Source: Geosiphon pyriformis uo1
Lineage: Eukaryota > Fungi > Glomeromycota
Reading direction: 5' to 3'
Length of the DNA stretch: 64,000 bases
Assembly: GCA_016748015.1 (NCBI GenBank)
Contig: JAAOMT010000602.1
Coordinates: forward strand, 1,579,367 to 1,643,366
In this document: positions 3,691 through 61,467 of the stretch, piece after piece
How positions within the stretch are numbered: the stretch's first letter is position 1
How the letters are laid out: each line of letters starts with the position of its first letter
Made by a program: the position numbers and the translations under genes
The notes under the pieces: model-generated
Told to the model about the DNA's origin: nothing
The model's input: the letters and a program-made list of their open reading frames with translations, nothing else
The model's database searches: none

Positions 3691-4461
3691 TGAAATTCAT
3701 ACTTAATTATCTTAATTAATTGTATAATAATAATTACATGATGTAATAATAGCTTTTACACTAAATCACTCGTTTGCTATTTTATATGTTGAATCACAAT
3801 TTTTATTAGTAGTTATTTAAAATATCATGCAAAATACCTTCTCGCTCTTTCATTACAAAATACTCCAATTCTAATAGAGATTCTAGGATCTGTTTTTTAC
3901 ATTTCCCCAACTATACTCCACATATTTTTGATAGAATTTAAATTAGAATTATTTGGCTATATAGCAAATGTGTTTCGGATTGTTATACTATTGAATCGCC
4001 ATTCACTACTAACATTTTTTTTTCTTTGATATATGTTTCCCAATAATTACTATTTAAATTATATGGATATAACTGGAAGAATAAAATTATAAATATTACA
4101 AGTTCCATCATAGCTTATTCTTTACAAATAACTATATATATATATATTCCTTTTTTATTGACTTTTTGTTTTGTTAACTTATTGTTTATTGAGTTTGACT
4201 TATTCCTAAACTTCGAAAGATCGCTCTATATTAAAACTCGATGTGGGCAATTCTTATGTTTTTATTCAAAAATTAATAAAATGTTCTCTAAAAAAAAGGT
4301 TCATTAGGGTAAACCTATTCAGAATGTACTGCGTTTAAAATAAGATTTTATTTAGGAATTTGGCTTTCTTGGAATGGATAGATTCTCTAAGTGCAAATAT
4401 CAAAATTAGAAGTCCTATTTAGCCTAACCTTTAGAAAAATATCTAATCCAGTGATTAAATT

Positions 4462-5952: not shown

Positions 5953-7046
5953 TAATAAGATATCTTAAAAAGAAAGGGATTCAAATTTTATATCTGGAAA
6001 GATGATAAACCCGCTGCAGAAAAATGATCTATTAGAAGTAAACTTTTATACAGTACATCACGAGTCTAATTACTGCATATTAAATAAATTCTAAATTTAA
6101 AGATTCGAGATTTTTTAGCATATAGCTTATATTTTATTATGTTTATAAAAACATTCTGCTTTAAACTAATTTTAAGAAGTGTTATGTCATGAGATTTGTT
6201 TAAATTATCAATACATTTGAAAACAGCAGCATTTAGTGTTGAATAATATAATTAAAAGTGCTTTTTTAAGAAATTAATTTTCTTGCAAGGTATATTTATT
6301 CATTTCTATAAAATAAAGCTGCAAGCTTTTCAAAGTATCTGAAATAAAAAACATAATATTTAAAGCATAACTGTCTTAAAAGTAAAAATATTGTAAAAAG
6401 ATTTATATCTTGACAAAACAATGGTCTGTCTCCATTAGTAAACCAAATTTTAAATTTTTTTTTTAAAAGTAATTGAGATTTTGCATGATTAAGAAAATAT
6501 AAATAGCTAAATATTATTATTTAAAATCATCAATGAAAACAAAATTTTTTATAAATATATACAATATAAAAAGAAATTTTCTCTTTTAATATGAAATTGT
6601 GTGTATGTATATTTTTCCTAAAAAGGGATTATCATACACCATGATATTAGTATTTTTCTTTATTTAAATCAAAATTCCTGAAAAATAAGATATAAAATCT
6701 GTGCTAAATATTATACACAAGTCAAATTCGATTAAATAATTTTTCATGTGAATAATAAAATGAATACATTCATGTAAAATGTGAAAAAAAGCTTTTAAAT
6801 AAACACAAAAGAAATCTTCAGATTTTTATTTTATTAAATAGCTTATAGCTTTGTAAGTCTTCTTAAATGTTTTATAATTATTTAATAATATTATATAAAA
6901 CTATTTTTAAATTAATTATTATTTATAAAAAATTTCTAAACCTAATTTTAACACAATAATTAATAAATTGGCAAAAACTTGATAGTAATATTAAAAACAT
7001 TAAATTTAAAGATATATTATAAATATTGTCAAATTTTTATCCAACA

Positions 7047-7146
7047 TTTTTTTTATTGCTTACACATATGTTGTCTATCTAAATACATCCATGTTCCACA
7101 TTAGACGCAGCTCATGCTTTTTTCTACACGTGATCAGCCACTCCTT
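7047..7146 (-). mobile_element. Poly(A)-tailed retroposon 3' end (LINE 3'UTR/SINE-like), copy A
   Basis: Reverse complement reads gagtggctgatcacgtgtag..agcatgagctgcgtcta..taagcaataaaaaaaa, matching 10287-10397 and 44772-44886. Confidence 0.6.
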
Positions 7147-7812
7147 ATTTATCAGACTAGTTTAAGGGTTTCATCAATTCCATACTTACAAACCAACATG
7201 AAATAATAGAAATTAATTAAAAATATTTATTTACGATTTAAATTTATATTCAATATTAAATATTGCAACTAAATATTAAAAGTAGAAAATTTCTTTAAAT
7301 TCTATTTTATAGCGATACCAATTTTATATTAAAATTATACTTAACAAGAAATTTCCAATTTATATCAAATCTGCAAATTCATTTTTTGATAAGTTTTCTG
7401 TTTTATAATCAACCTAAATTAAAACAATGTTGGAAATACTGGTTTTTAAAAAATTCACTAACTGAAATATCAGATAACCATCAACCCGTTCTTAGAATCA
7501 CGAATAGGGAAGTTCTACACTGGAATTGAAATACCAAAAAATTCCTATTAAAAAATTGTCAAGGTTAGTAGTAAAAATCCAAATTCAAATTGTGTAATGG
7601 ATATAGAATACTAAAATTTGAAAATGCACAAAAATTCTAAATTCTTTTTTCTCTTTTTTTATATAGAAAACGTTTCATTTACATGAACTCATATGATTCT
7701 TTTTAGAGCATTCCTCAATCAATAAAACTACCTTTTTCAAGAAAGAATAAAACGAGTTTTAATAAAACTGCCTCTTTATTTTCTCTATTTCTATTTCTAT
7801 TTCTTTTCTTAA

Positions 7813-8620: not shown

Positions 8621-8721
8621 GGTCAATTATGAATAATTTAACAAAAGTTTAAATTTGCAAAAGTAATTTTTAAAGCAGGGAAATAAAAATATTAGTTGCA
8701 GAAAAAACCAATAAATTTTTT

Positions 8722-8940
8722 AAAAGCTTTAAGGTTTTTGTCTGCCAATTGAAGAACTTTTCCAACTAAATGCTATTACTTAATTTAGCAACTTCCCATT
8801 CTACAATCTTTCTCCATATCTTACTTAAGTCATCTGGGATAAAAGTGAAGAAAGAATATTTTATTAAGGGAGGTAAAATTTTGAGAGTTAAAGACTATAG
8901 CTGCATTGTTCGGTGTTGAGCTTTTATAGCTTTCGAATGA
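8722..8940 (-). pseudogene. BTB-BACK-TLDc gene fragment (BACK region), paralogue 5
   Basis: Nucleotide homology to 1630-1875 and 5197-5440 (aaaagcttt..ccaattgaagaactttt..cccattcta..ttattaagggaggtaaaa..ttgagagttaaagact), with deletions. Confidence 0.8.
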
Positions 8941-17650: not shown

Positions 17651-18524
17651 TTAAATAATAAAATATTAGTAATTTGGTTAAGTAATAATTGAATAATTAA
17701 TAATAAAGATAATTCATATTAATTTTGGTTTAAATTTCAACTAATAAGAACTTTAATAATAATTAAAAAATTTTACAAATTTATAATAACATAAAACTAG
17801 TTCAAAAAAAAAATTACAATTTGTGAATTGTTTAAACTTTAGTACTTTTTTATTTTAACAAATCAAAAATGATTTGATCTTTTATAATGAAATAATCTAA
17901 AAAAAAGATTTGATTAGATTAATTTAAAGATTATTCTTAAATTTTAATTATTTAAATTATCAAAACCAACCAGCCTTTAGTAAGATCAATCAAAAAAATT
18001 TTAAGAATAAATAATATAATTTTAATTTTCGTAGAATCTAACAATACTAATTTCGAGAAATTTTCTTTCAGTAATTAAATATTTATAATTTTTATTATAG
18101 TATGATTTTATTTTCTAAAAAATAAATGATATTATCTACAAAAATAAATTAATATATGAATAAAAATAATTTTTTATGTTTATTTTTTAATGATTGATTT
18201 TTTCTGTCAGAGTTTTGAAATTCTAAACTAGTTGTAAAAAGTTGTAGCTTTTTAAAATAAAAAAAACAGTTCCAATGACCACTTTTAATTCAGAGCAACT
18301 CAAGTGGTTTTTTTAAAAAAATTAATAACAGAAAACTTATTAATTTCAATGTGGGTCAATCAAATATGGTTTGGTTTTATTTGAAAAAGTGAATATTAAT
18401 GTTCTGTTGTAATTTATTGTATTGAAAATAAATATATATTCTGCTTCAAACAATAATATTTCCAGTTAAATTTTAATTAATAAAAATCTCAATGCTCAAA
18501 ATTTGTTGGCTACTTAGCTGGCTG

Positions 18525-19068
18525 AATCAAAAAGTTAAATACAATTTGAGAATTTTGCTTTGAATAATTATTACTATCATCTTCAGAAGTTTTGGCCATT
18601 GTCACGGTCATCGTTATATTTGGGTTTGGGTGAATTGTTTGCCCTTACTCTTTTTTCGCTAAGTGTCATCAAAAACAAGAAACAGGGTCCTATGCCAATT
18701 TAATCAAGATTAAAGACCCATAATTATCATACCTCCATCTTCCTTTTTTCTAATTTTGAGCAATAATATTGGGCATGACACCAACCTGGGCAATCGTTAC
18801 ATTCCCAAACAATTGATCTAATTCTTCGTAGCTAATTGTAAATGCCGTGGAATGATCCGACCTTTTTTATTATAATTTGCAATCCGATCTGCATATCGGG
18901 CTTTACGCAACTGGAAAAATGAGGTCAATGATTAGATGCCTTAAAGCAAAATCATCATTTCCCAATAAATAATACGTTGAATGAACGTGATACTGCAGTA
19001 GATTTGCGTCAAATCTAGTTAAATTCAAGGCTAACGCACTTTTTACCTTTACTCTTTCCTGTAGACAT
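18525..19068 (-). pseudogene. Histone H2A variant pseudogene
   Basis: Minus-strand fragments: MSTGKSKGKK.., [47 protein letters not shown], plus an intron and acidic tail exon homologous to 39738-39850. Helix alpha2 is deleted and there are stops. Confidence 0.85.
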
Positions 19069-20127: not shown

Positions 20128-20800
20128 ATGTCGAATAGCACGGATAAAATTGTAGAGACAGTAAAAGGTGTGGGTCTTGGAAAAGGAAAAAATTTATTGG
20201 CTGTGTCAGGGGGAAAGCGTATTGTGGTTTCTCGTTCAACCAAGGTATTTCTTAAACAAAAGGGGTGATAAAATGAAAAACTCTTATTTAAAATGGTAAT
20301 CCTTCATTGTTCATAAGGCCGACCTAATATTTCCAGTCGGTAGGATCGGACGTCATCTACGTAAAGGTCGATACGCTGATCGAATTGGTAGCGCGGCTCC
20401 AGTTTATATGGCCGCTGTTATTGAATATCTCACCGCCGAAATCCTTGAACTGGCCGGTAACGCAGCAATTGATCACAATAAAGTTCGAATTATCCCACGA
20501 CACTTACAATTGGCCATCAAAAATGATGAAGAGTTAAACAAATTGCTTGGAAACGTCACAATCGCTCAGGGAGGTGTTTTACCTCACATTCATAAAGAGT
20601 TGTTGCCGCAAAAGTCGAGGTCGGGAGATGGCGGTAAAAACGATTCTGGCTATTTAAATTTTTTTTTCCGAATTTCCAAATATACTTTTGGTTGTTAAAA
20701 ATATTCGTTTTTCTTACTAGTCGGAAAGGGAGGTTCACGCAAGAAAAATCTTGACAGTAGCGACGACGATCAATCTCCGGACAATGTGGAAGATTGCTAA
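20128..20800 (+). CDS. H2A: Histone H2A, divergent variant with extended N-tail and acidic C-tail
   Basis: Exons 20128-20244, 20318-20633 and 20721-20800 give [29 protein letters not shown]|[87 protein letters not shown]|[26 protein letters not shown]. Confidence 0.92.
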
Positions 20801-28322: not shown

Positions 28323-29049
28323 AAAAAAGATCGGGATAAAAATAGAAGAAACCTAATTTATTGAAATATGAAAATTTGTTTCGTACTTTGAATTGCGAGT
28401 TTCATCAAAATTAAAATTTTTTAAATGTCAGAGGATTATTTCATTTTCATCTATAATCGAAATTGATTGGAAGATTATTTCGAGGGTTTTAATAAAAACT
28501 AGAGGTCACAAAGACTTTTTTTAAAATGTGGATATTTTAGTAATTCAAGAATTTAAGAAACCCCAAAGTAAATTGAACTTTGGAAATGCGATCGACTTTT
28601 TTTTCGATCATGTTCATTCGCTTTACCACGTTCTTAATATTAATGTTAGTTTGATTAAAAATATAATTTTCTTACAAATAATAATAATTTTATTATAAAA
28701 ATATTATTCCCATTTCGATGTTTTTTAAAAGTTACTTACCTTGTACCGGAAGGCCACAAAACGATGACATCCATGATATCTATGTTATCATGAATTATTT
28801 TATCTAATGAATCCTTTATTTCATTCACAATTTTACCATGTCATTTAATAAGCCTTTTGCCATAATGTTTTGATGACTTTACTTTTGTCACTAGCACATA
28901 CTCTTTTTTATACTTGATTGAAATGGATACCATAAAAAGTCTGGCATTTTTTCTTTCTTAAGAAGAGGAGCAAAAAATTTTATTTGCAATGAACAAATAC
29001 ATTAAGTTCATTAGTACACTTAGCAATAATAAAAATTCATTAATTTATT

Positions 29050-30088
29050 TTAATACCTAATACATTTAATTGGTATACATAGTTCACATACCATTCACAA
29101 GTCAAAAGCTCATTAACAAAAAAAGAGATTCTAAAATTTTATGAATAAAGTATTCTCAGTGGGAATAAATGAGCTCCACAATGATGATCTTTAAAGTCTA
29201 TAAGAAAAATAAGTGCAAAAAAAAAGAAGCCAAGAAAATAATGCTGCTTAAAAAAATAATAAATAAAAATTAAGTCAAGTAACAATAATCAACACAATAT
29301 TAACATAAATAATTTGTCAGTTTAAGAAGTAACAAAAATATATATTAAATAATATTTAAAAAAATTTATTTTAAAATTAAGTTTATTTTGCACTAAATTA
29401 TTGAAAATATGAGTATATATAAATATTATTATTTATTTATTTATTTATAAAATAGCTAAAATAATATTAATGGACTTTTTTAAATAGATATGTTAAAATA
29501 TTTTTTTCATGTTGCAAAAAGAATTATAAACTTTTTTTTAAACTTAAAATTAATTAATTTTATTAAGTTTATTAACAAACTTGAAATGTCTTTAAAAAAA
29601 AAAGTATTAAATTTATCTTTTTCGAAATTACAATAATTCTGACATATTTTAAAAAGCTATAAAAGTCTTAATACAAACAAAAATTAGCATTTATTGCATA
29701 ATTACTTTAAAATTTTACATTATAGTCTATTAATTGCTGTAGTTTTGCAAAAAAAAGTATGCACTTTTATATTACATCTTATTCAAAGTTTTATTTAATA
29801 GAAATATAATATTAAATTTAAAATTAAAATTAATTATTTAGAATATTGGGTATAGTGTTTTAAATAGGTTGAATCAGATTAAATTAAATTAAATCTTAAT
29901 TTTTTTATAAAAAAAAACTAAATAAATAAAAAATACTAGTTTAAACTTATTACTTTATAATTAAATAATAAAAATAATTAAAACATATTTAACAAATAAT
30001 ATTAAAAAAAAAAAACAATTTTTTTTTATTTTAAATTAAAATTTGAGTCAAAATTTAATATAAAATTATTAGTATAATTATTGTTTAC

Positions 30089-30119
<31 letters not shown>

Positions 30120-33100
30120 TAATTATTATTTAGTTAAATTTTCAATAATTATTACTTAATTTATAATCTAATTTGTAATTAGAAAAATTCTGTCAAAAAT
30201 TTTGTTAAACCATATTTTTTTGCTTATAATAAGTTTAATATGCTTTATGAAAACAACTTTTTAGTACTTAAAAACATTTTTATGCAAATTTCAGTTTTTG
30301 TAGTAGACTCTATTATTAAAGATACTTTAGAAAAAAAAATTTAATTGGTTTTGTAAAATATGTATAAAGCTTATAATTCTATTAATTAATTTAGCTAAAA
30401 CTAAGCTTAAAGTAAATATAAATATATAATAAGTTTATCAAATTTTTTGCAATTTATATAAAAATAGAATTAATAAGGTGATAACTAATTTTAGACTCTT
30501 AAATAAGTACAAAATACATAATAACTTGAACTAAAATAAAGTCTTTTTTTCTTTTCTTTGAAAAATATTCTATGATCTTTTGTTGTATAAAATTAAAAAA
30601 CATAAGCATTTGTGTAGATACTGTATAAATACTAAGTTTGTTGTAAAGACAAAAAATGTAGAAACCAGTTTAAACAAAACTTTGTTTTTTGTAGTAAGTG
30701 TTTTCATTAATAATACAATATAAATAAAGAATAGTCATATATCTATATAATATATCTTGAATATTATCAGTTAATTTTTTTCTATTAATGATCTTTTAAT
30801 TAACAATAAAAAAACAATAATTATTCTTATTAAGTAGAAAATTAAAATTGTTTTTTGTTCATTAGTAAACTGTTAATTATGATAGCAAAAAAAATAAGCT
30901 TTACAAATACCTGAAAATTTTTTGTTGTTTAAAGATATATTTAAGCCAAGTTTAACTAAAATGTATTTGGATATCAGGATTTTTTTAATTTGGTCTTAAG
31001 AAAAACTTTGTTAAATAAGCAGTTTTTTATTGGGTGTTAACTGTTTTGTAACTAATTTTTAAGTATAAAATTTAATTCAGTTTTATTTCAAAAAGTATGT
31101 ATAACAAATAAAATACTCTTATAAGAAAAAAACTCAAAGTCAAAACTGATCTGCCAAAAAATTTTCCAGTAAATTATTGTATTACTTTTCTTTGTATGGT
31201 TTAAAAACTTTTATGCAAATATAGACAAAGGACAAAATGGCTTCAGTAGTTGTTTTTCTAATAGTGCTAAGATTTTTGAATAGTTGTTTGATTATTGTTT
31301 TTGAATTTGCAGATATTGGGTTAGACACTATTACTAGAGGTTTTTGGTTTTTTTTTTGTATGTTATTAATATCTGTTTGCTATTAATTCACATTTTTTGG
31401 AAGCAGTTAAACCTCCAATAACTGATTTTATTTTCAAATTATCTTTTATAATTTAAACTGCTGGGCTTATAAGTGGAATGGTCAATTCTATACCAATTAC
31501 TTTGTATAGTTACGTTGTAGTAAATATCAACTTTTTCCCAAAAATTGCTTGTCTGGAAGCTCACTAAAAATGTGTAGTTACTTTATAGTAAAAGTTAACT
31601 TTTTTACAGGAATCTCATCTGTAGGCTACCTAAATAATTATAATAAGAAAAAAAAAGAAAATAAAAGCAATATAAAAGAAATATGATTTTGTCAATAGAA
31701 TTGTTTTCTATCCAGACCTGGAGTTGCTAATAAATTACTAAAATTGGTAATTAGTCAATTTCAAAATGTTAGTTGGGTTTTAGAGAATGTTAAGTGTAAT
31801 TATTTTATGAATTGGTTTTCGAAATATATCTTTATTTTGAATTGTACTTAATGAGAATAAATCTAAAGTAAAATATCTATGATAAGATACATTTTTCGAA
31901 AAGAGAAACTCTTCTTTTATACAATTTGTTATAGTACTAGTCTATGAACTTGAACTTTTCTCTTTTGTTATAATTTAGACAAACTAAAAATACATTTTGA
32001 TAAGCTACAAGTTATTTCGACAAACTATTAATTATTTTGGTGAACTATCTATTATTTTGGCAAATTCGGCAAAATTCGGCAAATTTTTGAATATTACATA
32101 GTTCAGAATATTGTGTAATTTGATCATCCTAATTTTTATTGTATAAATTGGATTATTAATTAAATAGTAATATTCGATAATTTGATTGAGTAATAAGTAA
32201 TAATTAAAACAATATTAATATATGCTAATTAATGATAGGAATTATAAGGGTAATTTTATGCTAATTAATAGCTAATATTTTACTAGTAACAGCACTTATA
32301 ATTTCATTGCAATTTTTTGTAAATCTAAATGTTAGCTCAGTAAACAATTTTTTTGTAAGCATAGTTAAAATTTTTTTGGACAATAAAATCTCATTGGTAA
32401 TAATATGCTCAGTGCTTTTTATAATTCTGACAAGTTTCTAATATTAGTTATTTTGAAAGCTTCTTATTACTATGGTGTAATCAATTTTTTGAAGCATTTT
32501 GGTATGGTTTTTGGTAATAAACTGTCGAATAAGTATAGTATAATTGTGAATTGAAAAATATTTCGTTATTAAAAAAGATTAGATCTAAGAGATTTAGTAT
32601 TTTACTGATTTAATTTGGCTTATAAATTTATAATAAACTTTGATTTTAAACTGTCGAATGAATTTCTGACTGGTAATATCTTCAATGTTTTGAATTCTGG
32701 TGAATTTTTATCTGTTTGAAAACATTTAGATAAGATTTGGTCTGAATTTTTTGTTATTTATATTGATAAATTTTTGAAAAATAAGAGTTCTGTATTCATA
32801 ACTTGTGGAATAGTAGCTTAATTTTTAAATATTGTGATAAGTATTAGAGTAAAAATTCAGAGTTTTATGTTTTTAACAATGACAAACTGCAGATAATTGC
32901 TTTAATTCTGGAGTATGTATCTTTTTTTTGTTCTATAATTCTATATTTAAACAGTTAAGCTGCAATTAATATGTGTTTCTTAGATTTAAATTTATGTTGT
33001 TCTGATTTTTATGCCAGTAATTAATTAAAATAGAGACATGTTGCTAATTTAATTAGAAATAAGAATATTCAGGTAAAATGAATAAAGATTAAGAATTATT

Positions 33101-35130
33101 TAAATAATAAAAGCAATAATTAAACAGATGTATTTGTTAATATTGCTGTTTATTCTTACATGTTTTTTCTTTATTGTATTTTAAAAAAATTTATTGGGGC
33201 TAATAGTTAAATAATATCTAATAATATTCATTATTTTATGTATAATTTTACAGATTAGTTTGTTGTATCTGATAGAAAGTGGATTTAATATAGATATTAT
33301 AACTAATTTGCTTGTTTATAGTATTAATTGAATTCACATTATTGTAATTTGGCATCCAAATTCTTACATATAATTTAAGTTTATTAGCAGAACATTTTTA
33401 GATCTGTGCATTTATATGATAATGACTATTTATAAAAAATTGCCAGTTGTTATTATAAAAAAACTTTATAACAAATGCTATTTTGGTGTATTGTGTTTAT
33501 TGTACAGTAAAGTAAAATTTTTTGATTATATTTTTATCTGTTTGAAGAATATTATTTTGCATAAAAAAGTGGCTTTAGTAATAATAAAATTTGCTTATAA
33601 GATTGTAAATATTATAGAATAATAGTGTGAATTTTTAGATCTAAATTTAAGGCAAACATAGAGATTAGTAGTTTAATTAATAATATGAGTATAATTTTTG
33701 GACTGTTATATTCTTTGTTATTTTACTTTTTAGATAATATAGTTTATATGCTTGGTATTTATAAAATTTTTGCTATTTGTTTTGGTTTTATAAGTTTTGT
33801 TTATTTTTTTTGGATTGGATGATAATGTAAAGTACAAATAGATATATAATGTGGTTTTAATTAATTCAAGTGGCTGATTATATAAGTTGTATTTAATTAG
33901 AATTTTTTAATTTTATTCTTTGTACTAGATAGCAATTAAGCTACACTTATTAAATAAATTTTTTTTTAATGCTTAAAAATTTTTAAGCTGTTATATAATT
34001 ATTTTATTAAAAATAATTGTACTTTTTTTATATTATTAAATAATATTAAATTTTTAAATGTTTTGCTATTAATATTAACAAATATTGTAATTGTAAAAAT
34101 AACCAATTTTTTTTAATTTATTATAGTTAAACTATATTTTTAATAATAAAACAAAAACAAATAGTAATATTTTGCAAAAATTTTAGTAAATTTTTAAAAA
34201 CAAAATATATATTTTAGCAAACTATAAAATATTTTAATAAACTATTGAATATTTTGAAAAATTAATATTTTAACAAATTTTTTAATATTACATAATTTAG
34301 AATATTATATAATCTAAATATATTATTTTAGTTGTATTTTTTTGTTGTTGAAATTGGATTAATAATAATAAAATTTTAAGAAAATAATTTTTAACTAGTA
34401 ATACTGTGTACAATTTATTTAACAAAAACTTTAATAGCAAAATATATTGAAAAATTTGTTTTATTTTTTGTTTTTTTAATTTGTTTATGTAATTTATATT
34501 TATTTTGTAGTTTCAAAATTGTTTATCATATTAAATTTTTTAAAACAATAAATTATACAAAATATGTTACAACAATAAAAAAAAATTTATTTCAATTTAA
34601 GCAATTGTATACTTTCCTTTTTAGTTAACTTAAAATTTATTATTCACAAAATATATAAAACTTTTTTTCTAATGTGGCCAACCAACCTAATTGTAAGCTT
34701 TATTTATGTTTTGTAATATTATTTAAAAGTTTTTTTCTTAAAAAATAAAAAATTGTTACTTTTAAAGCATTATTAATTGTTTGCAAACTGTAAATATAGA
34801 ATTTACTAATATTTTGAATAAAATTTATTTTTGTTATTTTAATTAAAATTAATAATTTAATATTTGTAATTATTTATTTTTATTTACATAACTTAGAAAT
34901 TATAAACAATCTGATTTTTTAATTATTAATCACATTTTTAGTTTTTAAGAAAAAATTAAAAAACATACTTAATTGGTTACATTATTTTTAAAACTTATTA
35001 AAAATTTTAAATAAGCCAAAAATCTTATTATTTAGTAATTTAACATTATATCCACTAGTTTATTATTAAAATTATGTTATTTTCTACATATAATAATAAA
35101 TTATATTGGTTTTATAACTATACATATAAT
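29050..35130. mobile_element. Extremely AT-rich tract of hypermutated TE relics
   Basis: About 6 kb with very few CpGs and almost no ORFs, containing copies of the dispersed 20-bp-unit repeat. Element class cannot be resolved by eye. Confidence 0.5.
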
Positions 35131-37078: not shown

Positions 37079-38575
37079 ATGTCACCCCAACAACACTTCC
37101 AAGCTTTATCTAATGATTTCGGGAATTTATTTAACACTCAGAAGTTCTCTGATGTTAAAATTATAGTTGGCGAAGCGCCCAATATCCAAACTTTTCATGC
37201 CCATTCGCAAATTTTAGCAGCAAGATCACCATATTTTGCTGTCGCACTCTCTAGCAATTGGATTAAAAGGGAAAAAAATATCATTATATTCCCTAAACCT
37301 AATATTTCACCAAAGATTTTTGAAATAATTCTCAGGTAAGGGTTTTCATTTGCTTCAAATATTTTGGCCAACATAAGACTCACTGTTTTGTTTCCTGTAG
37401 ATACATTTATAATGGCGAAATTTCTCTTGATAAACATGGAGTACCTACCATTTTAGAATTCCTTGTTACAGCTGACGAGCTTATTCTAGAAGACATGATT
37501 GACCACCTTGAAGACTATTTGATCGAACACCGTGCAAAAGAGCTAAAAGAAAATTTCACCACTTTGCAGAAAACTTCATTTATGCATGATTGTTTCAAAA
37601 AGTTACAAAAATTCTGCATCGAAATAGTTGCTGAAAATCCAGCAATAGTCTTCAACTCGCAAGATTTCACTTCCCTTAGTGAAAATGCACTTTTCTCAAT
37701 TTTAACCCGGGATGAACTAAATATAGAAGGAAATATGGGAAAAGATTGTAGAATGGGGAGTTGCTAAATTGGATAAAAATATTCAGACGAAAAAAGTTCT
37801 TTACTGGACAGATGAAAACTTTAACGCCTTTAAGGAATCCATCGAAAGGCTTCTACCTTTAATCCGCTTCTTTAACATATCTTCAGTTGACTTCTATCAC
37901 AAAGTAAAACCATTTGCGAGAATCTTACCTGGAACTTTATATGAAGATCTTTTACATCATTATCTCGTACCGGGTAGTCATCAAAAATCTGTAGACGCTC
38001 AGCCATCACGTTTTCCACAATTAAGTATTAAATCGGAGCTTCTTCAACCCCACAATATAAAACAGCTTGATCACTGGATTCAAGGCAAAGACGAAAGCAC
38101 CCCTTTTCAAAACCGACATGGAAATGATTTTAAATTGTTACTTCGAGGCAGTCGAGACGGATTCACTCCAGCCGATTTTCATCGATTATGTGATAATAAA
38201 GAAGCATCAGTAAGCGTAATAAAAGTGAAAGGAACTGGTCAGCTAATTGGCGGCTATAACCCGCAGTCTTGGCACTCTAGGAATAGTTGGTTGGAGGGAA
38301 AACGAAGTTTTATATTTTCCCTTGGAGATGGCAAACTTGGAAAGGCTAAACTTAGCAAATTTGTTATGGAATTTGGACCTTTTGGTGGGCCATATAATGG
38401 ACCCTCTTTTGGAAATGGCAATATTGGATTGTATGGCAAGGATTTTAAAAATAGTCCAGGGGCCTATTGTAAAAAGACAATAGATTATGAGCATGCTATA
38501 ATGCCTGGGTCAGAAAATCAACAGGTGAATTTCTTTGTCGAGGAGTATGAAGTTTTTCAAATTATAAAAAGATAG
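37079..38575 (+). pseudogene. BTB/POZ-BACK-TLDc gene, paralogue 3, single frameshift
   Basis: Exon 1 37079-37335, intron 37336-37400, exon 2 from 37401. A ~5-nt deletion near 37729 (ata gaa g|gaa ata tgg vs EEIEIW) shifts the frame. The rest is open to TAG at 38573-38575. Confidence 0.85.
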
Positions 38576-39737
38576 GTTTGCTTTTATTTGATTTAATTAT
38601 TCATTTTCTGTAAGTTATGCTGCTTATCTTAAAAGTTGTCATTAGCAGAATATTCTATAGTCTACTATTTTAAGCCCTAAAATAAAGTTAAAGAATAAAA
38701 ATTTTTATTTTAAACATCAAAAAAACTTTAGAAATTATAAGTTGTTTGACAAAAAGTGATCTTTGAAGTTTAGGTTTTTATCACAGGCTAAAATTATAAA
38801 ACGCTCTTTTAGCTGAATAACATTAGAAATATAATATATTTGTATTTCCTCTCTAATTAAAATTATAAACTTTGGATGGCGTTTTAATTTTTACTGTGCG
38901 ATAATATAAAAAAATACTTTAACGAAATATTCAATACGGAAGTTTTGAGATATTCGAAAAGAGTAAAAGTTTTCAAACAAAACATATCCTCAGCTTTCTT
39001 TTTTTATTGACTGTACTTTGAAATTCCGATTATTCAAAAGAAATGCAATTGAAAATGCCTTTCAACTATTAGTAACATTATATTTTTTGCTTTATTCCTT
39101 TATTTTTGCATTTTAGAAAAATAAATTTAGTTAACTGATAAAAGTAATGAAGATTATATTAATTATGATATCGATTAGAACCAACATAAAAAAACAAATG
39201 CAAAACAATTACCTTAAAGTGAATAAAAGTTATTAAATATTAAATTCATTTAAAACTTTAAATAATAATTATCTGCAAAAAAACAAATGCCTTAGGATAC
39301 TTTTCTTATAAAAATATAGAGCTATTAATATCATTGCAATAATAAAAATTTCAATTAGATAAAATTTATATTCTTCCCAAAAATGTGCTGAAGAAAACCA
39401 TTCATTAAAAAAGTCTCATTTGAGATACAATTTGAAAGAAATCAAATCTTGAAGATTACTTAATGTTTATTCATATTAACTTAGAATCCATATGGGAATG
39501 ATGCTAATTTAAGTCATGGCCTGACAATCCTAATTTCGATTAAAACTAAAGGTCTCAAAAAAATTGGGTATTGATTTTCTGTTGTAACTTATTGTATTAA
39601 GGTCAAGGTTTAAGAATAATACTTTTGTTGAAAAATGTATAGTAATGAATAATATTTCCAGTTAAATTTTAATTATGAAAATCTCAATGCGCTAAATTTA
39701 TTGGCTATTTAGCTGGCTGACATATTTAAAAATTAAA

Positions 39738-40977
39738 TCAAATTAAATACAATTTGAGACTTTTCTCTGAATCATTATTACTCTCATCTTCAGAAGTTTG
39801 GCCATCGTTATCTTTGGTTGAATTGTTTGCCATTGCTCTTTTTTCGCTAGCTATCATCAAAAACAAGAATCAGGATCCTATATCGAAATAACTCAATCTA
39901 ATCAAGATTAAAAACCCATAATTATCAGACCTTCATCTTCCTCTTTTATAAGTTTGGGCAACAATTTTTTCGTCACATTCTCAAACAATTGATTCAACTC
40001 TTCGTCTTTATGAATAGCTAATTTCAAATGCCCTGGTCTGATCCGAGCTTTTTTATTATCACGTGCAGTATTACTAGCCAATTCCAAAATTTCTGCAGCA
40101 AGGTATTCGAGGATAGCGGCCATGTATATAGAAGCACAATCACTAATCTGATCTGCATATCGGCCTTTACGCAAACGTCGACGAATTCGACCAACTGGAA
40201 AAATGGGACCCGCCTTGAAGAAATTACTGCTCAGCGGATTATCATGATGTTGGATAGGTCGACCTTTCTCTGTCGCCTCTGTCTCCGTTTGCGTCCCTTC
40301 AATATGATAAATTTATTTAAATATAAGAAAAATAAAGGAAACAATTTATAAATATACCACAAAGAGTCCAGCGAGGTAACGTAAACGAAATTCTTTTCAT
40401 CTCCCTAGTTAGCCAGAGTTTGTCCTCCTCTCCTAGTTTGCGTTTAAGATTTGCAGAACCAGCAGAAGTTAGTCAATGTCGCAAACATTATATACCAAAC
40501 ATTCTCTCAAATATGGATATTTCTTCCAAAAAACGCTTAATATTACAAGATGAAAAAATAATAATATAGATAGTATGGATAGAAAGGTAAATTTACAAAA
40601 TTGTTACCTGTCTTTTTTATTTCTGTTATCGCATTGTGTAACTTTTCCACCTCCACCTTCAACTCGTTCTTGTCTACGAAGCTGTTACCTGTTTTACTTG
40701 TTTCTGTCAACGCATCTTGGAGTTTTCGCACCTGCAACGCCCATATATTTTTATTCGTTTTTAGCTCGTTCACCTCTTCTTCCAGCTCTTCTTTTTCTTC
40801 TATCCATGCCTCCTTTTCATCAGTGTCCGTCCACTTTTTTCCTCTCAACTTGTTCTTTAATTCACTTAACCTATTTCCCTCCTCACTCTTCCTAAACTCC
40901 TTTAGCTCCTCCACGCATCTCTTATATTCGGTTATAGTGTCTCCTAATCCACGTTCGATCTTGTCCACACTAGCCAT
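39738..40977 (-). CDS. Putative coiled-coil::histone H2A fusion protein (4 exons, 307 aa), docking domain partly deleted
   Basis: Exons 40977-40608, 40432-40358, 40296-39931 and 39850-39738, all joined by phase-1 GT-AG introns, total 924 nt with no internal stop. H2A core: [56 protein letters not shown]2A homology is certain; the fusion splicing is inferred. Confidence 0.6.
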
Positions 40978-41074
40978 GATGTTATGTGCGTTTGTTATGG
41001 TTCGGGAAGATAGGGCCCTAACATATGTTTGGTTCGTGTCGATGACGTTTCAGATCTTTAATCTATCAGTATAA

Positions 41075-44000
41075 ATTACAATTTTATGGTAATAATTATT
41101 GTATTGTGTAATAATTATTAATATTATTATTAACTATTTTTTGAATATATTAAAATAATTTTAAAGTTATTATTGCATTGTATATTTTTAGCATTTTAAT
41201 TTAATTTAATTTAAAAACTTTTTTCTTTTGCATTTTTATGAGTTTACTTAAAACAAAGAGCAGTATTACAGATCGGAATAACATGCTAACTGATAGCAAG
41301 GTGGAACAAATATTTTCTATTTTTTCATAGTTTTTTATAAGTTAATAATAAAATATACACTAATTTTATATTCTATTATAATTTGTTTTTTAATAATAAA
41401 CAAAGTATTTGGTAATTTTTTATCTAATATTTATCAAAAATTAAAAAAATATTTTGTATATTTAATCAAAAAAATATTTTCTATGTTAAATAAAATATAT
41501 ATGTTTTAAAATTATAATAATTCTACTTATACTTGTTTTAATGTTTTATTAATCAATACTATAATTATTATAAACTAGTAACCAATTAGTTTTTTTCTGA
41601 TATTTTTTGATTTTTGTATTATAAACAGATTAATTATTAAATATTGTTTATATTAATTTTATAAAATATAAAATCTGTTGTTTAATACTTTTTTAATAAT
41701 AAATGATCTTTTTTATTAACTTGAAAATTTGTTACTAAAAATACTGTTTCTATCTGGTTTGTATTTAAAAACTAAGTTATTAAAAGATTTTATGAGTTTT
41801 TTTTTTTTAAGTCTTTCTTAAAACTATTTATGTTTTTACTAAAGAATTTAAAATTGTTTCAAGTTTTTATTGTAAAATATTTTGGGTATTTAAGTTTTGT
41901 TATTTTTTTAAAAGATATTGTCTTAATATTAGTTTTAATAAATAATATTGCTATATGTTTATACAATTAGTAAAAAAGTTTATAATTAAATATATTATAA
42001 TATTATGATTAAATTTTTTACTTTTTAGCTTTTATTTATTTACTTAGCCAAAATTATTTATATGTATTAGTCATTAATGTCATTAATTAGCCATCTTATT
42101 TTTAGAATTAATTATTAATATAATTATTAACATAATCAATAACTTAATTATTAACTTAGTTATTAATTGGGTTATTAATCTAATCATTGACTTGATTACT
42201 AATCTAATTATTAATTTTTTTTGAAAGTATATAAATGAACTTTTTAAAGCTATAAAAAGACATTTACACTTGACTTATACTCAAATTAATATAATAATAT
42301 TAACTTTTTTTAATTTTTTATTATTATTTGTATAATTATTAGTTTTTGTAAAGTATATTGAAGAAATATTTACTGAAAAATACAATTAATATCTAATATT
42401 AAATTCTAAAAGCATTAATATAAGACATAGAATTATATTAATGTATTATTTTTTGTTAACAATACAGACTATTTTTTTATTTTTGAATTTTTTTGTTATC
42501 TTTTAAAAAAAATAACAACTAAAATATTTATAAGACTAATCTTACACATTAAATTTTTACTAATTTAATTTACTTATTAAAGTTGAATTATTTTTTTGAT
42601 TGTTTTATTATTATACAAAGTTATTTTTTCTTGCTATTTATTAGTTTGTTAATTCGACTGTAATATTATAGTTGAATTTCTTATTTATTTAACCATAATT
42701 AATCATATGTATTAGTTATTAATATTATTAATTAACTATTCTATTTTTAGAATTAGTTATTAATATGATTATTAACTTGATTAATAGCTTGATTATTAAC
42801 TTAATTATTAACTTGATTATTAATTTAGCTATTAATTTAATTATTGATTTAATTATTGATTTAATTATTAACCAAATTATTAATGTAATTATTGCTCTAA
42901 TTATTAATTCTTTTATAAAACTATATAAATAAAAACTCTTTAAATTTTAAAAAAAGTATTTATATTTAAATTATATTTAAATTAATATAATAATATCAAC
43001 TTTTTATTTTTTTTTACTTTTTTTTACTTTTTTTCTTGATTTGTATAATTATTAGTTTTTGTAAAATATATTAAATAAAAATTTACTGAAAAATACAATT
43101 AATATCTAATATTAAATTTTAAAAATACTGATGTAAAACATAAAATTATACTAGTGTGTTATTTTTTGTTGACAATATAAATTATTTTTTTACTTTCAAA
43201 TTTTTTTGTATTTTTAAAAAGAATAATAACTAAAATATTTATAAAACTAATCTTGTATATTAAATTTTTATAAATTTAATTTGTTTATTAAATTTAAATT
43301 ATTTTTTTAATTATTTTATTGTTATACAATACTGTTTTTTTTTGTTATTTATTAACTTGTTAATTAGAATATACAATAATTTACTATTTAATAAACAAAA
43401 AATATTAAAGACAAAACTTTGTTTTATAAGTTTTTTGTTTTTTGGTTTTTATTAAAGTTTTACAAAGTATTTAATTAAAATACTTTATCAATTTATTTGT
43501 TTGAAAATATTAAAAAAAAGATTTGTAATATAATTTAAGTTTTTTTGCTAATAAATTAACAAAACTTTTTTTCTATTTAAAAGTAAATTTTAAGATATTT
43601 ATAATAATTTATAATTTTTTTATATATATTATTAACAATTAAAATAGCTATTTAATTTGATATTTTATTTATTTTTTTAAGTAATTATTGCTGTAATAAT
43701 ATATTTGTTTTTATTAAAAATTACTGTTAAGAATTTAACTATATTGATTTTAATTTTTTTAAAAAGTTGATTAACAAATATTTAATAAATGTTTTCTTTT
43801 TAATTAAATTTTTTTATTAATAAATAATTTAAAGATTAATAATAATATTATATTAGTGTTTTTTAAATTGTTTTATTAATAAATTTATATACATATTATA
43901 TATTTCAATTTTTTTTTGATATTTTTGATACAATTAATTCTAATAAATCAAATAGAAATTTAAATATTTTTACAAATATTTTTTTTGGAGATGATTATAA

Positions 44001-45900
44001 TTTGATAAATATTATTTTTATTTAAAATTTAATAAAAGCTAAATTATTTTCTAAGTCTATTATTATGTTTGATTTTAAATAATACAAATAATTAATTTGT
44101 GAAATTTTTACTAAAATTTTTTATTGCTAAATTGTTAATTAAAATAAAGTATTTGTATTTTGATTATTTTTTTTGATATTTAATTTTATAATTATAATTA
44201 TATAATTGAGAATTTAATAAATAATTTGTTTATATATCAATATTTTTTTGTTTTATAATTAGACTAAGGTTTAATAATTAATATATATTATAAAATAAAT
44301 ACTTAAAAAATATTGATTTTAATAGTTAATTGTTTAAACTATTATTAAGCATTTTTTTTTAATAATAATATAATTCTGTTTGATTAAAAACATTATTCTA
44401 TTTATATAAACTATAATATATTCATTTTTGTATTGGCTGGATTAAGAAAAATTTTATTTTTTAAAATAAAATAACTTAAAAAACAAATAAATTGATATTT
44501 AAAAAATAATTTAATAGGATTTATTTTGAAATTTGTATTAAAAGTTTGTTAAAAATAAGTTAAATGCTTTTAAATATATAATTATATTATTATATTTGGA
44601 ACTTTTACTTTTTAGTTTTATTTATTTATTTATTTAGTTATATATATTAGCATTAATAATATTATTAATTATTTTATTTTTAGAATTAGTTATTAATGTG
44701 ATTATTAACTTAATTAATAACTTTATCAATAACTTGATTATTGAATTATTTAGTGTTGTCCTGACTGGTTCGAGTGGCTGGTCACGTGTAGAAAGTGCAT
44801 GATTCGCGCTTAGTTTAGATCATTTCTTTGATGTATAGTTCTAAGTAGCGTTTGGACTTCACTCGTTAAATGTTAAAAAAAAAAAATTAGTTATTAATTT
44901 AATCATTAACTCAATTATTAACCAAATTATTAATATAATTACTAATTTGATCATTAATTTTTTTTATTAGTATATAAACGAAATTTTTCAAAGCGATAAA
45001 AATTTATTTACACTTCGATTAATTTATTTAAAGCAATAATTAATACAATAATATTGACTTTTTTATTTTTTTTAACTATTTTTTGACTATTTCTTTCTTA
45101 ATTTGTATAATTGTTAGTTTTTGTAATGTATATTGAATAATTATTTACTAAAAAGTACAATTAATATTTGATATTGAATTTTAAGAGTATTAATATAAGA
45201 TATACAATTATACCCGTGTATTAATTTATATTAATGATATAACTATCTTTTTATTTTTTTATTTTCTTGTACTTTTAAAAAAAATAATAACTGAGATATT
45301 TATAAAACTGATTTTACTAATTCAATTTGCTTATTAAAAGTTGAATTACCTTTTTATTATTTTTATTTTTATACAATACTGTTCGCTTTTGCTATTTATT
45401 AGTGTATTATACCTAATTATAACATAAAAGTGATGCTTTTTGTAAAATTGTCAAACTATTGAATTCATTTATTATTGTATGGACAATTACTTTTTTTTAT
45501 AGCACAAAAAATCTAAAATAATTTTACAGCCCATAATTAAAATGATTTAGTTTATATTAAATTTAATCTTCTTTCATTTTATCTTATTTGTTTTCCAGTT
45601 GAAAAAAAATCTAGTTAACAGTTTCAAAATTTTTTGATCAATTATATAGTAGAAATTTATTTAGCATACACAGTTTACTTTTTTAATAAGAAAAAATTTG
45701 AAGCAAAAAACAATTATATTAATTACTTTTAGTCAACTTTTCCTCGAGTTTGAAATCTTAATTAACAAATTCACAATTGAATTACTGCTCATTAATTGAC
45801 TGAAACTTTTTAAGAAACCAAAAACAAAAAAGCTATTCAACAACTCCTAGTTTTAAACTTTTTTTAAGCAATTTAGACTTCTTATCTCGAACTTCAACAT
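41075..45900. mobile_element. Hypermutated retroelement relic region containing a triplicated ~600-750 bp unit (42061, 42706, 44641)
   Basis: Three alignable copies, each with 12-bp internal repeats (minus strand gttaataatcaa = VNNQ). Extreme AT content. Confidence 0.65.
44745..44886 (+). mobile_element. 5'-truncated poly(A)-tailed retroposon insertion (copy C)
   Basis: A GC-richer block (gagtggctggtcacgtgtagaaagtgcatga..A12) interrupts the third repeat unit and is absent from the other two units. Confidence 0.7.
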
Positions 45901-46900
45901 TTGTTATGGCTCTTGTTAAAGCATATATATTACTTACTCTTCAAGATATTTAAACTGTTCTAAGTTGTTAAAATATAAGTCTTTTATCTTTGTTTTGAGA
46001 AGATTCTCAAGATCCAATAGATTGGCTTGAAAAATTTAAAAAAACTACTACTGCAAATTAGTATAATAATAATTACAAGTTTCAAATAATTAAAGGATAT
46101 CTTTAAGGGTTTTCTGTTATATAGCTCATCCAGAAAATAACTAGTGGAGCTGTTTAACAAATTGTTTAATAATTTTCTAAGAATACTGGTCAAAATAATT
46201 ACTGAATATGCCAAAGCAATTCAGAAATTAATAAAATAGGTAGATTCAAGAAGAAACTGGATGGAAAAAAAAGATTCACTTTTTTACTAGAGATTTATAA
46301 ACATATTTATTATATGTTCTATGGCCTTTTCTTACGATAAAAAATAATTTCACATTAGATACTACAGTAGAATTGGAGTGCATAGAAGACAATTAACAGA
46401 TTCACTTAAGAAACATTCTTCCACTGCTGACAACTGCTTCAACCTTTGCTCCTGCTCTCTAAATGACTGTTATATTATTTACTGTCTATGTTCAAGACCC
46501 AAATAAACAATTAATAAATAGACTGATGGCAAATTTGGCCAGACTTTTAGAACAATTAGCAAGAACTGTTCAAGAAAATCAGAGATCCCCAAAACCTCAA
46601 TATCAGTCTTGTTATAATCAGCAGCAACAACCCCAATATAATCCAAGGCCTAAAGAGCAAAGTCATTCAGTTTGTTATTGATGTAGAAATACTAACCACA
46701 AGGCACAACACTGTAAAATCCTCCTATGCCTCTGCCAAATTTGAGAAATAAAAATCAATAGAATAATGGAAACAACAACAACCGTGCTCCTAATCAAGAA
46801 GCTAATCAGGCCTATGTAAACTTCTTTGGAGAAAATCCTTTACTCAAAGCAACAGAATAAGAGTTTTTAAGCCAGCGGGCACATCTTTCGAGGTTAAGAG
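45900..46900 (+). mobile_element. Ty3/Gypsy-type gag relic with CCHC zinc knuckle
   Basis: Reads QDPIDWLEKFKKTTTAN*Y..YKFQIIKGYL* (retrotransposon gag pattern), a Q/P-rich linker, and C-Y-*-C-R-N-T-N-H-K-A-Q-H-C (CX2CX4HX4C) near 46673-46714. Confidence 0.8.
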
Positions 46901-47087: not shown

Positions 47088-48584
47088 TTAATTTTTCTGG
47101 ATTTGAAAAACTTCATAATCATCAAATAAAAATTCTACCGCTCTTTTTTCGGACCCAGGCATTATAACGTGCTCATAATTTGCTTCATTTAGACAAATGC
47201 ATGGAATAGATTGAAAATTAAGACTATATGTTCGAATACTACCATAGCCAAATTGGGGTCCGAACTCTTTATGACCAAAAGGTCCATATCCACTAACGAA
47301 TTTGCTAAGTTTAGCATTTTGAGGTTTGCCATCTCCAAGGGAAAAAATAAAACTTCCCTCTCCGTTAAAATGTGAACCTAAAGAGTGCCAAGATTCCGGG
47401 GTATAGCCGCCAATCAATTGACCAGTCTCTTTAACTTTGATTACAGTAATTGTTGCTCCTTTGTTATCACATAATCGATGAAAATCATTTGGTGAGAATC
47501 CGTCTCGACTGCCTCGAAGTAGTAATTTAAAAGCATTTCCTGGTTTGTTTTGAAAAGGAGTGTTTTCGTTTTTGCCTTCAATCCAGTGATCAAGTTGCTT
47601 TATATTGTGTGGTTGAAGAAGCTCTGATTCAATTTTTGATTGTGAAAACCGTAATGACTGAGCGTCAAGAGATGTTTGATGACTCCCCGGTACTAGATAA
47701 TGGTGTAAAAGATCTTCATATAAGGTTCCAGGTAAAATTCTCGCAAATGGCTTTACTTTATAATAGAAGTCAACTGAAGATATGTTAAAGAACCGGATTA
47801 AAGGTAGAAATTCTCCAATAGATTCCTTAAAAGCTTCAAAGTTTTCATCTGTCCAATTAAGAACTTTATCCAATTGAATCTCATTGCTTAATTTAGCTGC
47901 TCCCCATTCTAAAATCTTTTTCCATATTTCAATTTCTTCCATATTTAAGTCATCCCGAGATAAAATTGAGCAAAGAGCATTTTTATTAAGAGAGGTAAAA
48001 TCTTGAGAGTTAAAGACTGTAGCTGGATTGTTGACAGCTATTTCGGTGCAGAACTTTTGTAGCTTATTGAACGAATGATGGTTGAAGGATGTTTCATTAA
48101 AAGTGGTAAAATTTTTTTCCAAATCTGTTGCATGGTGTTCAATTAGATAATCTTCAAGGTGATCAATAAGTTTTTCTAGAATGAGTTCATCAGCGGCAAT
48201 AAGCAATTCTAAGATTGTAAGTGCTCCGTGTTCATTAGGAGATATTTCACCACTATAAATGTATCTAGATAAAATAAAAAAATTAAATAGTCATGAATAG
48301 AAATATTAAGCCAACAAAATTACTCACCCAAGAATCACCTCAAAAATATCGGGCGATATATTAGGTTTAGAAAAGACGATGGTTTTATTTTCTCTTTTAA
48401 AATCACCACTAGACAGCGCTACAGCAAAATACGAGGATCTTGCTGCTAAAATTTGTGAATGGACATTAAAACTTCTAATATTAGGCGCTTTGCCAACAGC
48501 AATCCTAACATCAGAAAAATTCTGACTATTCAATAAGCTCTTAAAATCGCGAGATAAAGTGTGAAAGAGTTGTTGGGGTGCCAT
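47088..48584 (-). CDS. BTB/POZ-BACK-TLDc domain protein, paralogue 4, 477 aa
   Basis: Exon 1 48584-48328, 63-nt intron 48327-48265, exon 2 48264-47088. Intact and very similar to paralogue 2. Confidence 0.93.
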
Positions 48585-48886: not shown

Positions 48887-50159
48887 CAGTGTGTTGCAAA
48901 AATTGGACAAAAATGCACATCACAAAACTTGATACAGTTTAACCAATTTTAGTTAGTTTGTAGCGGTTGAATTAGGAAGTGAATGCTAAGATAAGTGGCT
49001 AAATATGATAAATTTTTTTCGCGCGTTTTACTAATAATATTTTTAGAAATTTTCTTGCACAATGCTACCTTCCAAGCAAGAAACACAGCGCCAAACCGTA
49101 TTATATTTTTGGAATGAAGGGATACGAGGCTCAACTGAAATAAAACAGCGAACAAATATACCACGCTCTACTATCTATAATATCCTTAAAAAAATTCGAA
49201 AAAACAGGGATGTTGGAGCATGCGGGTGGAAATGATCGGCCGCGAAAAATTAAAGATGCATCACGAACATTAGGACAACACCTCCGTCGAGATTCTTCAA
49301 TATCTTTGAGGACTTTGAAAATAAATTAGCAAAAAAGAATGTAGACGTTTCTCCTAGTACTATCCAAAGGCATTTAATTAATCATGGATATAAAAGACTT
49401 GCCTTTGGCAACTCCAATGCTCACCAATCTCCACAAGGAAAATCGTGTAAAGTGGGGTCAAGAACATCTCAATGATAATTGGAAAAGAACTGTTTTTTCG
49501 GATGAAACAGCTTTTTGTCTATTCCGAAATACAGTAGAACGTTGGTATAAAGGCCAGCGACCAACTCGTGCTATACCAAAAGATCGAACAAAAATTATGG
49601 CGTGGGGTGGATTTTATGAGAAAGAAAAGGTAAGTTTATTTTGTTTTACCCAAATAATGGATGCTAAGTTCTATGTAGAAATTATTCGTGAACATTTACC
49701 TGAGATAAGAGGAATGTTAGGGAATGAGTGGCGGTTTCAACAGGACAATGACCCAAAGCACACAAGCCATCTAGCCAAAGCCTTTCTTCAAGAGAATATG
49801 CCTGAAGTTATAGCTTGGCCATCTAATAGTCCTGACTTGAATCTCATTGAAAACTTATGGGCTATTGTGAAAAGGAATGTGGAGAAGCGTATGCCCAAAA
49901 ATCGGGATGAATTAGAGCAGTTTATAAAGGAAGAGTGACGAAATATTCCCCGATCTACCCTAATTGGGTTAGTGGGATCAATGAAACACCGTTGTGAGAT
50001 GATAATTGCGAATAAGGGGGAAAGAATATCATACTAAATTTCTTTTTAACAAAATAATGTGCTTTTAACTTTCTAATTGTATATAATTTATATCTTTTGG
50101 TGCATTGGATAAAGCATAGTGATTATTTTTTTCTGTCCAATTTTTTTTGCAACACACTG
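48887..50159 (+). mobile_element. Tc1/mariner (DD34E) DNA transposon with complete ends and a defective transposase
   Basis: TIRs CAGTGTGTTGC(A)nTTGGACA at both ends and TA TSD (48885-48886, 50160-50161). Transposase 49062-50037 has VFSDET, QQDNDPKH and SPDLNLIENLW (34 residues D to E), three frameshifts in the N-terminal half and a TGA at 49936. Confidence 0.95.
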
Positions 50160-60754: not shown

Positions 60755-61315
60755 CCTACTCGCTTCTTGGTAAGGAAACTATTTAGATAATTATCGAACA
60801 AAGAATAAACTGCGGAATGAATTATCTTAGATTCGATTAGGTGCGAAAAACCTATTATAGCTGTTTTGGTAATCAATCCTGTAAAGCAGTGTCTGATAAT
60901 CAACCTACTCGCTTCTTGGTAAGGAAACTCATTCAACAATGAATAAACTGCGGAATGAATTATCTTACATTCGATTAGGTGCGAAAAACCTATTATAGCT
61001 GTTTTGGTAATCAATCCTGAAAAGCAGTGTCTGATATTCAACCTACTCGCTTCTTGGTAAGGAAACTCATTCAACAATGAATAAACTGCGGAATGAATTA
61101 TCTTACATTCGATTAGGTGCGAAAAACCTATTATAGCTGTTTTGGTAATCAATCCTGAAAAGCAGTGTCTGATATTCAACCTACTCGCTTCTTGGTAAGG
61201 AAACTCATTCAACAATGAATAAACTGCGGAATGAATTATCTTACATTCGATTAGGTGCGAAAAACCTATTATAGCTGTTTTGGTAATCAATCCTGAAAAG
61301 CAGTGTTTAATAATC
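60755..61315. repeat. 138-bp tandem repeat, ~4 near-identical copies
   Basis: cctactcgcttcttggtaaggaaact recurs at 60755, 60904, 61042 and 61180 (periods 149, 138, 138). Confidence 0.95.
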
Positions 61316-61467
61316 AGGGAGCCTACACGACTCTGTAAAGATTCTCTTTTTGTTAAGTATATCCGATATTTTTAATATGTATTAACTAATTTGCTGTTAT
61401 TGAGTCTCCATAAATGAAAAATCTTGTCAAATCAGTGTTATTCCCAACTTTTTCTGATAAAATGGGC

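Follow-up and report, generated by a model that had tools for sequence, protein, structure and literature searches.

A gene on the reverse strand of a Geosiphon pyriformis contig joins the header of a large Crinkler-like gene family to the second exon of a histone H2A gene, and it is probably an accidental DNA-level join, by now with little or no constraint on its amino acids. A first-pass annotation, made from the sequence alone, had proposed a nucleosome-destabilizing variant resembling the short H2As or a decoy for H2B, with a young accidental chimera as its fallback. The former proposal was not supported: the H2A part has an approximately neutral substitution rate and has lost 12 conserved residues and its first exon, and our searches returned neither an orthologue nor a spliced transcript. 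The fallback is supported by the same observations on rate, residues, orthology, and splicing. We infer an accidental origin by rearrangement and no chromatin role, and the evidence on the chimera points to decay.

The window (the whole 64,000-nt stretch of DNA that was analyzed) lies on contig JAAOMT010000602.1 (C639) of a 128.3-Mb assembly of 792 contigs. Within it, four exons of the chimera at 40977 to 40608 (370 nt), 40432 to 40358 (75 nt), 40296 to 39931 (366 nt), and 39850 to 39738 translate by script into 307 amino acids without a stop. All three introns (175, 61, and 80 nt) are GT-AG introns in phase 1, so that the 307-aa frame and the 61-nt second intron (40297 to 40357) described in the first-pass annotation were borne out, as was the GACTAAC branch motif ahead of the 75-nt exon, which is present at 40474 to 40468 in intron 1. 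The first AG past this motif, at 40433, is in frame. Alternative sites are also available: an in-frame donor at 40688/40687 gives 280 aa, and an acceptor at 39847 in intron 3 gives 304 aa with a non-acidic tail. The public model of the locus (KAG9290164.1, hypothetical protein G9A89_010470, Geosiphon pyriformis; 277 aa), whose residues 1 to 123 are identical to the exon 1 product, has introns 1 and 2 as first proposed and then reads through into intron 3; it is a prediction and, as proof of splicing, is not independent of the sequence. Given the acceptor at 39847 and this read-through, the presence of the acidic tail is not certain. The features of the locus and of its two relatives in the window are as follows.

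40978 to 41162, reverse strand: upstream region and 5′ leader common to the header family (blastn, about 25 family loci, 80 to 89% over 41084/41072 to 40951; reaches 41162 in L007 and L035).
40608 to 40977, reverse strand: exon 1, Crinkler-like coiled-coil header, a mosaic of A and B (110 genome matches; tail best against L064, 79%; helical model).
40433 to 40607, reverse strand: intron 1, 175 nt, family derived, with a cryptic AG at 40433 (alignment to the donor subfamily).
40358 to 40432, reverse strand: exon 2, 75 nt, a remnant of the second exon in donor-subfamily genes (70 to 71% identity to C706, C721, C710, C716, and C367).
40297 to 40357, reverse strand: intron 2, 61 nt, conserved among donor-subfamily genes (alignment).
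40220 to 40296, reverse strand: the "linker," the first ~26 codons of the donor's third exon (homology stops at 40221 in four relatives).
40214 to 40219, reverse strand: fusion junction, ending in the intron 1 acceptor of the H2A parent (aag followed by GCG), now coding (acceptors of L051, L054, and L055; exact DNA unitig).
39931 to 40213, reverse strand: H2A exon 2 remnant, residues 21 to 101 and then 113 onward (Pfam Histone, 2.6e-10; no Histone_H2A_C).
39851 to 39930, reverse strand: intron 3, 80 nt, from the H2A parent (87% identity to the sister copy).
39738 to 39850, reverse strand: exon 4, acidic tail of the H2A parent, with the alternative AG at 39847 shifting the frame (spliced model; sister comparison).
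39559 to 39737, reverse strand: 3′ flank of the H2A parent (match to the sister's flank).
18452 to 19068, reverse strand: sister H2A pseudogene with exon 2 deletions of 20, 78, 10, and 11 nt (73% identity over 463 nt).
20128 to 20800, forward strand: intact divergent H2A gene G9A89_010466, 170 aa, same exon plan (genome and protein comparison).

The 5′ half belongs to a family of more than 100 copies: exon 1 has 110 matches across the Geosiphon genome, and N-masked stretches were left out of the family loci. In annotated relatives, the same header stands ahead of kinase, P-loop-like, and other unrelated C-terminal regions (kinase in P0004, P0008, and P0009; a weak AAA match in P0015; others in P0006, P0010, and P0013), which it always joins after a phase-1 donor at the header end. 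The kinase matches were above the cutoff, and the putative nuclease side of the payload carries PD-(D/E)xK-like motifs, with a weak HSDR_N match (E, 0.002) and atlas leads at 0.78. The structure model of the header is an all-helical hairpin (pLDDT, 92.8), for which atlas and fold searches returned generic coiled-coil matches and no specific structural match. No signal peptide or hydrophobic signal stretch was found in the chimera header, and LxLFLAK and HVLV motifs are absent from it. All 14 named close header matches that were looked up came from Geosiphon, the weaker ones being unnamed or generic coiled coils; relatives of one family payload, with different N termini, occur in Entrophospora and Paraglomus.

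CR/Crinkler families combine unrelated headers, some of them alpha-helical, with REase-kinase or NTPase-REase payloads and recombine at the header end (PMC5289972). The donor family resembles them in its reusable N-terminal header, in recombining where the header ends, and in its diverse C-terminal domains (kinase, P-loop, and payloads with nuclease-like motifs), but its header is a Geosiphon-specific helical hairpin rather than the Ubl domain with LxLFLAK/HVLV of strict CRNs. The chimera departs further from this pattern, having a host histone exon in place of an enzymatic payload, since the donor is cut at about 40220.

Two headers make up exon 1. Header A (40977 to 40688) has a phase-1 donor of its own at 40687 and is followed by 23 nt of A's intron and then by the tail of header B (about 40677 to 40608). 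The upstream and promoter region of the family is intact at the chimera by blastn. Private changes in the header (4 synonymous and 11 replacement) are similar to the family median pN/pS of 0.52 and are uninformative on selection. Elsewhere in the genome, header exons commonly occur as tandem pairs separated by a few hundred bases (L009, L016, L020, and L002 on C538, C627, C515, and C559), which is consistent with frequent recombination among headers.

The middle of the gene was inherited from the donor. Positions 40520 to 40221 match five other loci at 70 to 71% identity, and the alignment assigns intron 1, exon 2, intron 2, and the linker to the donor family gene itself. The first-pass annotation had called the linker non-histone, which is correct, but it is not new sequence, having come with the 75-nt exon and the 61-nt intron. 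Donor homology ceases at 40221-40220, with none beyond; in relatives, the third exon runs on into a nuclease-like and kinase region. Stops or frameshifts disrupt every one of the five closest donor-type genes, which were compared and read as stop-bounded pieces. Within the window, no piece of the donor's payload (the 3′ half) is left, and there is no trace of an H2A first exon or promoter upstream of the chimera. Both halves kept introns, which argues for genomic rearrangement rather than retroposition. Three other origins were rejected: retroposition or trans-splicing, because introns and flanks are retained in both halves; insertion of a family gene into an H2A intron, because the H2A exon 1 and promoter are missing upstream; and insertion of an H2A exon into an intact family gene, because payload sequence is missing from the window. 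A dispersed repeat with more than 50 copies occupies 38645 to 39461. On C543, C716, and C367 it immediately precedes donor-type genes, whereas at the chimera it is downstream and inverted, a hint of a local inversion.

The H2A part begins at 40213, right after the AG that serves as the intron 1 acceptor in three intact paralogues (L051, L054, and L055). It retains a histone fold (Pfam Histone, 2.6e-10, above the cutoff, with CBFD_NFYB_HMF the only other domain); no match to Histone_H2A_C was found in the chimera. Over 81 residues it aligns ungapped with solved H2A chains, from which residue numbers were taken. A deletion of 33 nt between 39971 and 39970 has removed residues 102 to 112 (human numbering), confirming the clean in-frame 11-aa deletion noted at first, and is followed by the LLPK segment and tail, with L at position 119, the site of the K119 that short H2As lose. 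The acidic patch and acidic tail had both been reported as kept; the patch is retained at six of six positions (E56, E61, E64, D90, E91, and E92), but the tail is not certain for the splicing reasons given above. Also retained are R29, R32, R35, and R77. The part carries R42Q, R81G, R88H, and N89K along with the fold substitutions L23P, G44S, G46C, V49I, V54I, G67S, and A69T, and the E/K-rich header (net charge, −4) has replaced H2A exon 1.

The nearest relative of the H2A part is the sister pseudogene at 19068 to 18452, and the likeness extends over intron 3, the tail exon, and the 3′ flank. Since most of the segment missing from the chimera is still present in the sister, the 33-nt deletion arose on the chimera branch. 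The sister and the intact H2A gene at 20128 are arranged head to head. The latter had been used as the reference H2A in the first-pass annotation; it is indeed intact but is not canonical, being itself divergent (G22D, G46A, R71I, N73H, K74N, and R88K), and the protein search returned no close orthologue of it. It is one of three intact divergent H2A genes in Geosiphon (with L054 and L055 on C650), which have long N-tails and an additional acidic-tail exon. This subfamily (G9A89_010466 and the two C650 genes) shares identical intron positions and the acidic tail exon with the chimera and is the parent lineage of the H2A half; unlike the chimera, it retains the first exon, the docking domain, and a low dN/dS. 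Apart from the chimera, the genome encodes five intact H2A genes in all and an H2A.Z, including a canonical H2A on C661, so that the chimera's H2A copy is dispensable. One H2A, L052 (C789:326527-326817), has a basic C-tail whose last stretch contains SPKK. Protein searches were run exon by exon, the sole joined protein queried being the public P0001, by id; no orthologue of the chimera was found in searches with both H2A exons and the protein, and it forms a single-member protein cluster on one contig.

Measured against the sister, the H2A part gave a pN of 0.154 and a pS of 0.186 (pN/pS, 0.83; Fisher P = 0.53) in a test limited to 54 codons with a pseudogene as partner; non-coding divergence (intron plus 3′ flank) was 0.126. 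Functional nucleosomal H2A is under strong purifying selection, which this ratio does not reflect, and it has the intact docking domain and conserved arginines that the chimera is missing. Seven replacements fall on the chimera branch (the one at position 22 is ambiguous, the residue there being the same as the canonical one), compared with expectations of 6.1 at a dN/dS of 1, 0.6 at 0.1 (P = 4e-6), and 1.2 at 0.2 (P = 3e-4). A dN/dS near 0.3, which is within the short-H2A range of 0.24 to 0.32, is possible if all or most of the non-coding divergence lies on the chimera branch (P, 0.11 to 0.22). Comparison with the intact H2A paralogues by dN/dS was uninformative because synonymous sites are saturated; the intact divergent genes have a dN of 0.08 to 0.21, with low dN/dS and likewise saturated synonymous sites. 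Among residues with at least 90% conservation across 114 H2A homologues, twelve are changed in the chimera, including R42, R81, and R88, versus 0 to 6 in intact paralogues. Every one of the 21 derived residues in the H2A part is one base from a paralogue residue, and 11 of them are explainable as G>A or C>T, against an unweighted expectation of 14%, as expected from mutation pressure. These sequence comparisons suggest that the H2A part evolves about neutrally, with little or no amino acid constraint.

The comparisons show that a header-family gene was severed 26 codons into the third exon and that the cut donor was joined to the intron 1-exon 2 boundary of a local H2A duplicate, the frames matching by chance. 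The H2A copy would thereby have been left with neither its promoter nor its first exon and been freed from histone constraint, and the docking-domain deletion and neutral-rate substitutions would then have accrued with a G/C-to-A/T bias. Any protein made would be a helical hairpin attached to a histone fold, which might still meet H2B but would be without the parts that hold the H2A-H2B dimer on (H3-H4)2 and DNA. Those parts are the N-terminal arginines, R42, R81, R88, and residues 102 to 112. Entry of the product into stable nucleosomes is unlikely, and it would have little effect at the expression seen.

Four sequencing runs were compared as contigs, from which rare forms drop out. Two of them, X2 and X3, appear to be RNA-like, since single-copy flanks are missing, paralogous headers are deep (343 to 7500 in X2 and 127 to 1071 in X3), and proportions are alike between the two and unlike those of the DNA run. 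Neither X2 nor X3 has an exact contig for chimera exons 1 and 2, and X3 has no chimera contig at ≥99% identity. Spliced reads linking the coiled-coil exons to the H2A exon had been put forward as a check on the gene model; no spliced join at any proposed intron was present in the contigs of X2 or X3, a form of the data in which rare transcripts are lost. One exact 206-nt contig of the H2A exon (39987 to 40192; depth, 8.7) was found in X2, with a 10-nt loose end finishing in a run of G. We take this end to resemble a template-switch oligonucleotide, in which case the contig would be antisense. Expression of the chimera is low at most in the sampled runs, and silence is not implied.

It is possible, though doubtful, that the two halves are adjacent remnants that are never co-spliced, in which case the header would be read alone (as a 144-aa frame into intron 1) or nothing would be, and the 307 aa would exist on paper only. 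The donor subfamily's polypyrimidine tract and AG for exon 2 are deleted in the chimera, which leaves the AG at 40433 as a cryptic acceptor, no branch-like motif was found in intron 2, and the single exact RNA-like contig covers H2A alone and is possibly antisense. This reading sits uneasily with the position of the in-frame AG at 40433, the first after a perfect branch motif, and with the intron 2 sites, which were inherited intact; the NCBI pipeline also picked the same first two introns, a choice that is not independent of the sequence.

A young fusion that functions off chromatin is unlikely. Here the header would carry the H2A fold as a decoy for H2B or for acidic-patch or chaperone partners, and the captured histone exon would be kept as a translated, docking-deficient fold expressed in an unsampled stage, a proposal to which we likewise give a small chance. 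The header could possibly be a dimerization or delivery module, with loss of docking and DNA-binding residues tolerated or favored. The chimera has an open frame of 307 codons, in contrast to the sister H2A and the five closest donor-type genes, which are all broken, and this frame was kept by the junction, the 33-nt deletion, and additions of 81 nt in the header and 9 nt in the linker. In simulations of neutral change at 6.3% divergence (d = 0.063), the whole model escaped a stop with a probability of 0.06 (0.48 for the H2A part), for a frame picked among more than 100 headers by a scan favoring open frames; some frame-keeping events may predate the fusion, from when each parent still worked. 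The complete acidic patch and the intact family promoter region fit such a fusion as well, and there is a precedent in RiNLE1, an effector of an arbuscular mycorrhizal fungus that is reported to interfere with host H2B ubiquitination (PMC8048545). Against it, substitutions have occurred inside the fold too, from L23P to A69T, at a neutral rate and with a mutation-biased spectrum, no spliced RNA was found, and the header has no signal peptide or LxLFLAK-type motif. Geosiphon's known partner, moreover, is a cyanobacterium, which is without histones.

Very unlikely is a nucleosome-destabilizing variant that works like mammalian H2A.B. Short H2As (H2A.B/L/P/Q) evolve fast, with a dN/dS of 0.24 to 0.32 (10.1101/165936), and the chimera is like them in its shortened docking domain, with segment 102 to 112 missing, in the loss of the L1 arginine, and in its fast evolution. 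However, its deletion is internal rather than a C-terminal truncation, its acidic patch is unaltered, and of the L1 and L2 minor-groove arginines, R42 was lost (R42Q) but R77 was kept. The arginine-rich N-terminal tail is absent, and the chimera has no arginine-rich tail at all; in its place is a large N-terminal fusion of 176 aa, the H2A first exon being gone. It is a fungal gene of unrelated origin, with a neighboring fungal pseudogene as its nearest relative, outside the eutherian X-linked clade, and it occurs in a single genome at near-zero expression that lends the variant no support. With an internal deletion, an intact acidic patch, and a tail that is not arginine-rich, the likeness to H2A.B is superficial. 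Like macroH2A, the chimera fuses an H2A fold to a non-histone domain, but its fusion is N-terminal, Pfam finds no macro domain, and it is not conserved and its histone fold is degraded. A limited literature search found no description of a comparable header-histone fusion.

The junction is a real DNA join. In the DNA run X1, an exact 1135-nt unitig (39352 to 40486; 90x) covers the junction and the 33-nt deletion, with more than 250 nt on either side of the fusion, and other exact pieces tile the chimera, including exon 1, at 80 to 95x. X1 is possibly the assembly's own sample; scaffolding error is nonetheless excluded. Misassembly at the junction, which the first-pass annotation had named as grounds for refutation, was ruled out by this short-read unitig, which spans it with no differences. 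The region is repeat-rich and the header has more than 100 relatives, but with one exact unitig across the junction and 80 to 95x tiling of the gene, an artifact uniting two unrelated loci is scarcely conceivable. In the same run (87x) and in X3 (53x, a 1859-nt contig with intron sequence retained), we also detected a single-copy paralogue of 40305 to 40573 that is at least 90% alike and has an 88-nt deletion; it is absent from the genome search matches.

Even as an accident, the chimera is a snapshot of a modular, effector-like family in Glomeromycota gaining a new C-terminal part. The captured part is a host histone exon and not another nuclease or kinase, and the donor type, the sister, and the junction are all readable. 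Should its product prove to be expressed and to bind H2B, the chimera would count among rare fusions at the N terminus of H2A and would exemplify the birth of a gene from an effector header.

The rest of the window contains repeats and duplicated genes; the gene and transposase names given here come from the look of the sequence. Four or five BTB/BACK-TLDc-like copies, 76 to 95% identical, lie at 991 to 2009, 4462 to 5574, 37495 to 38575, and 47088 to 48206, with a fragment at 8708 to 8910. A Tc1/IS630-like DDE transposase frame is found at 49384 to 49938 on the forward strand, with a remnant at 3402 to 3687. Two regions, 41000 to 46000 and 29000 to 35000, are very AT-rich (GC, 10 to 19%), with an old tandem duplication at 42036 to 43368, and a tandem array with units of about 143 to 149 nt lies within a 182-codon frame at 60755 to 61316.
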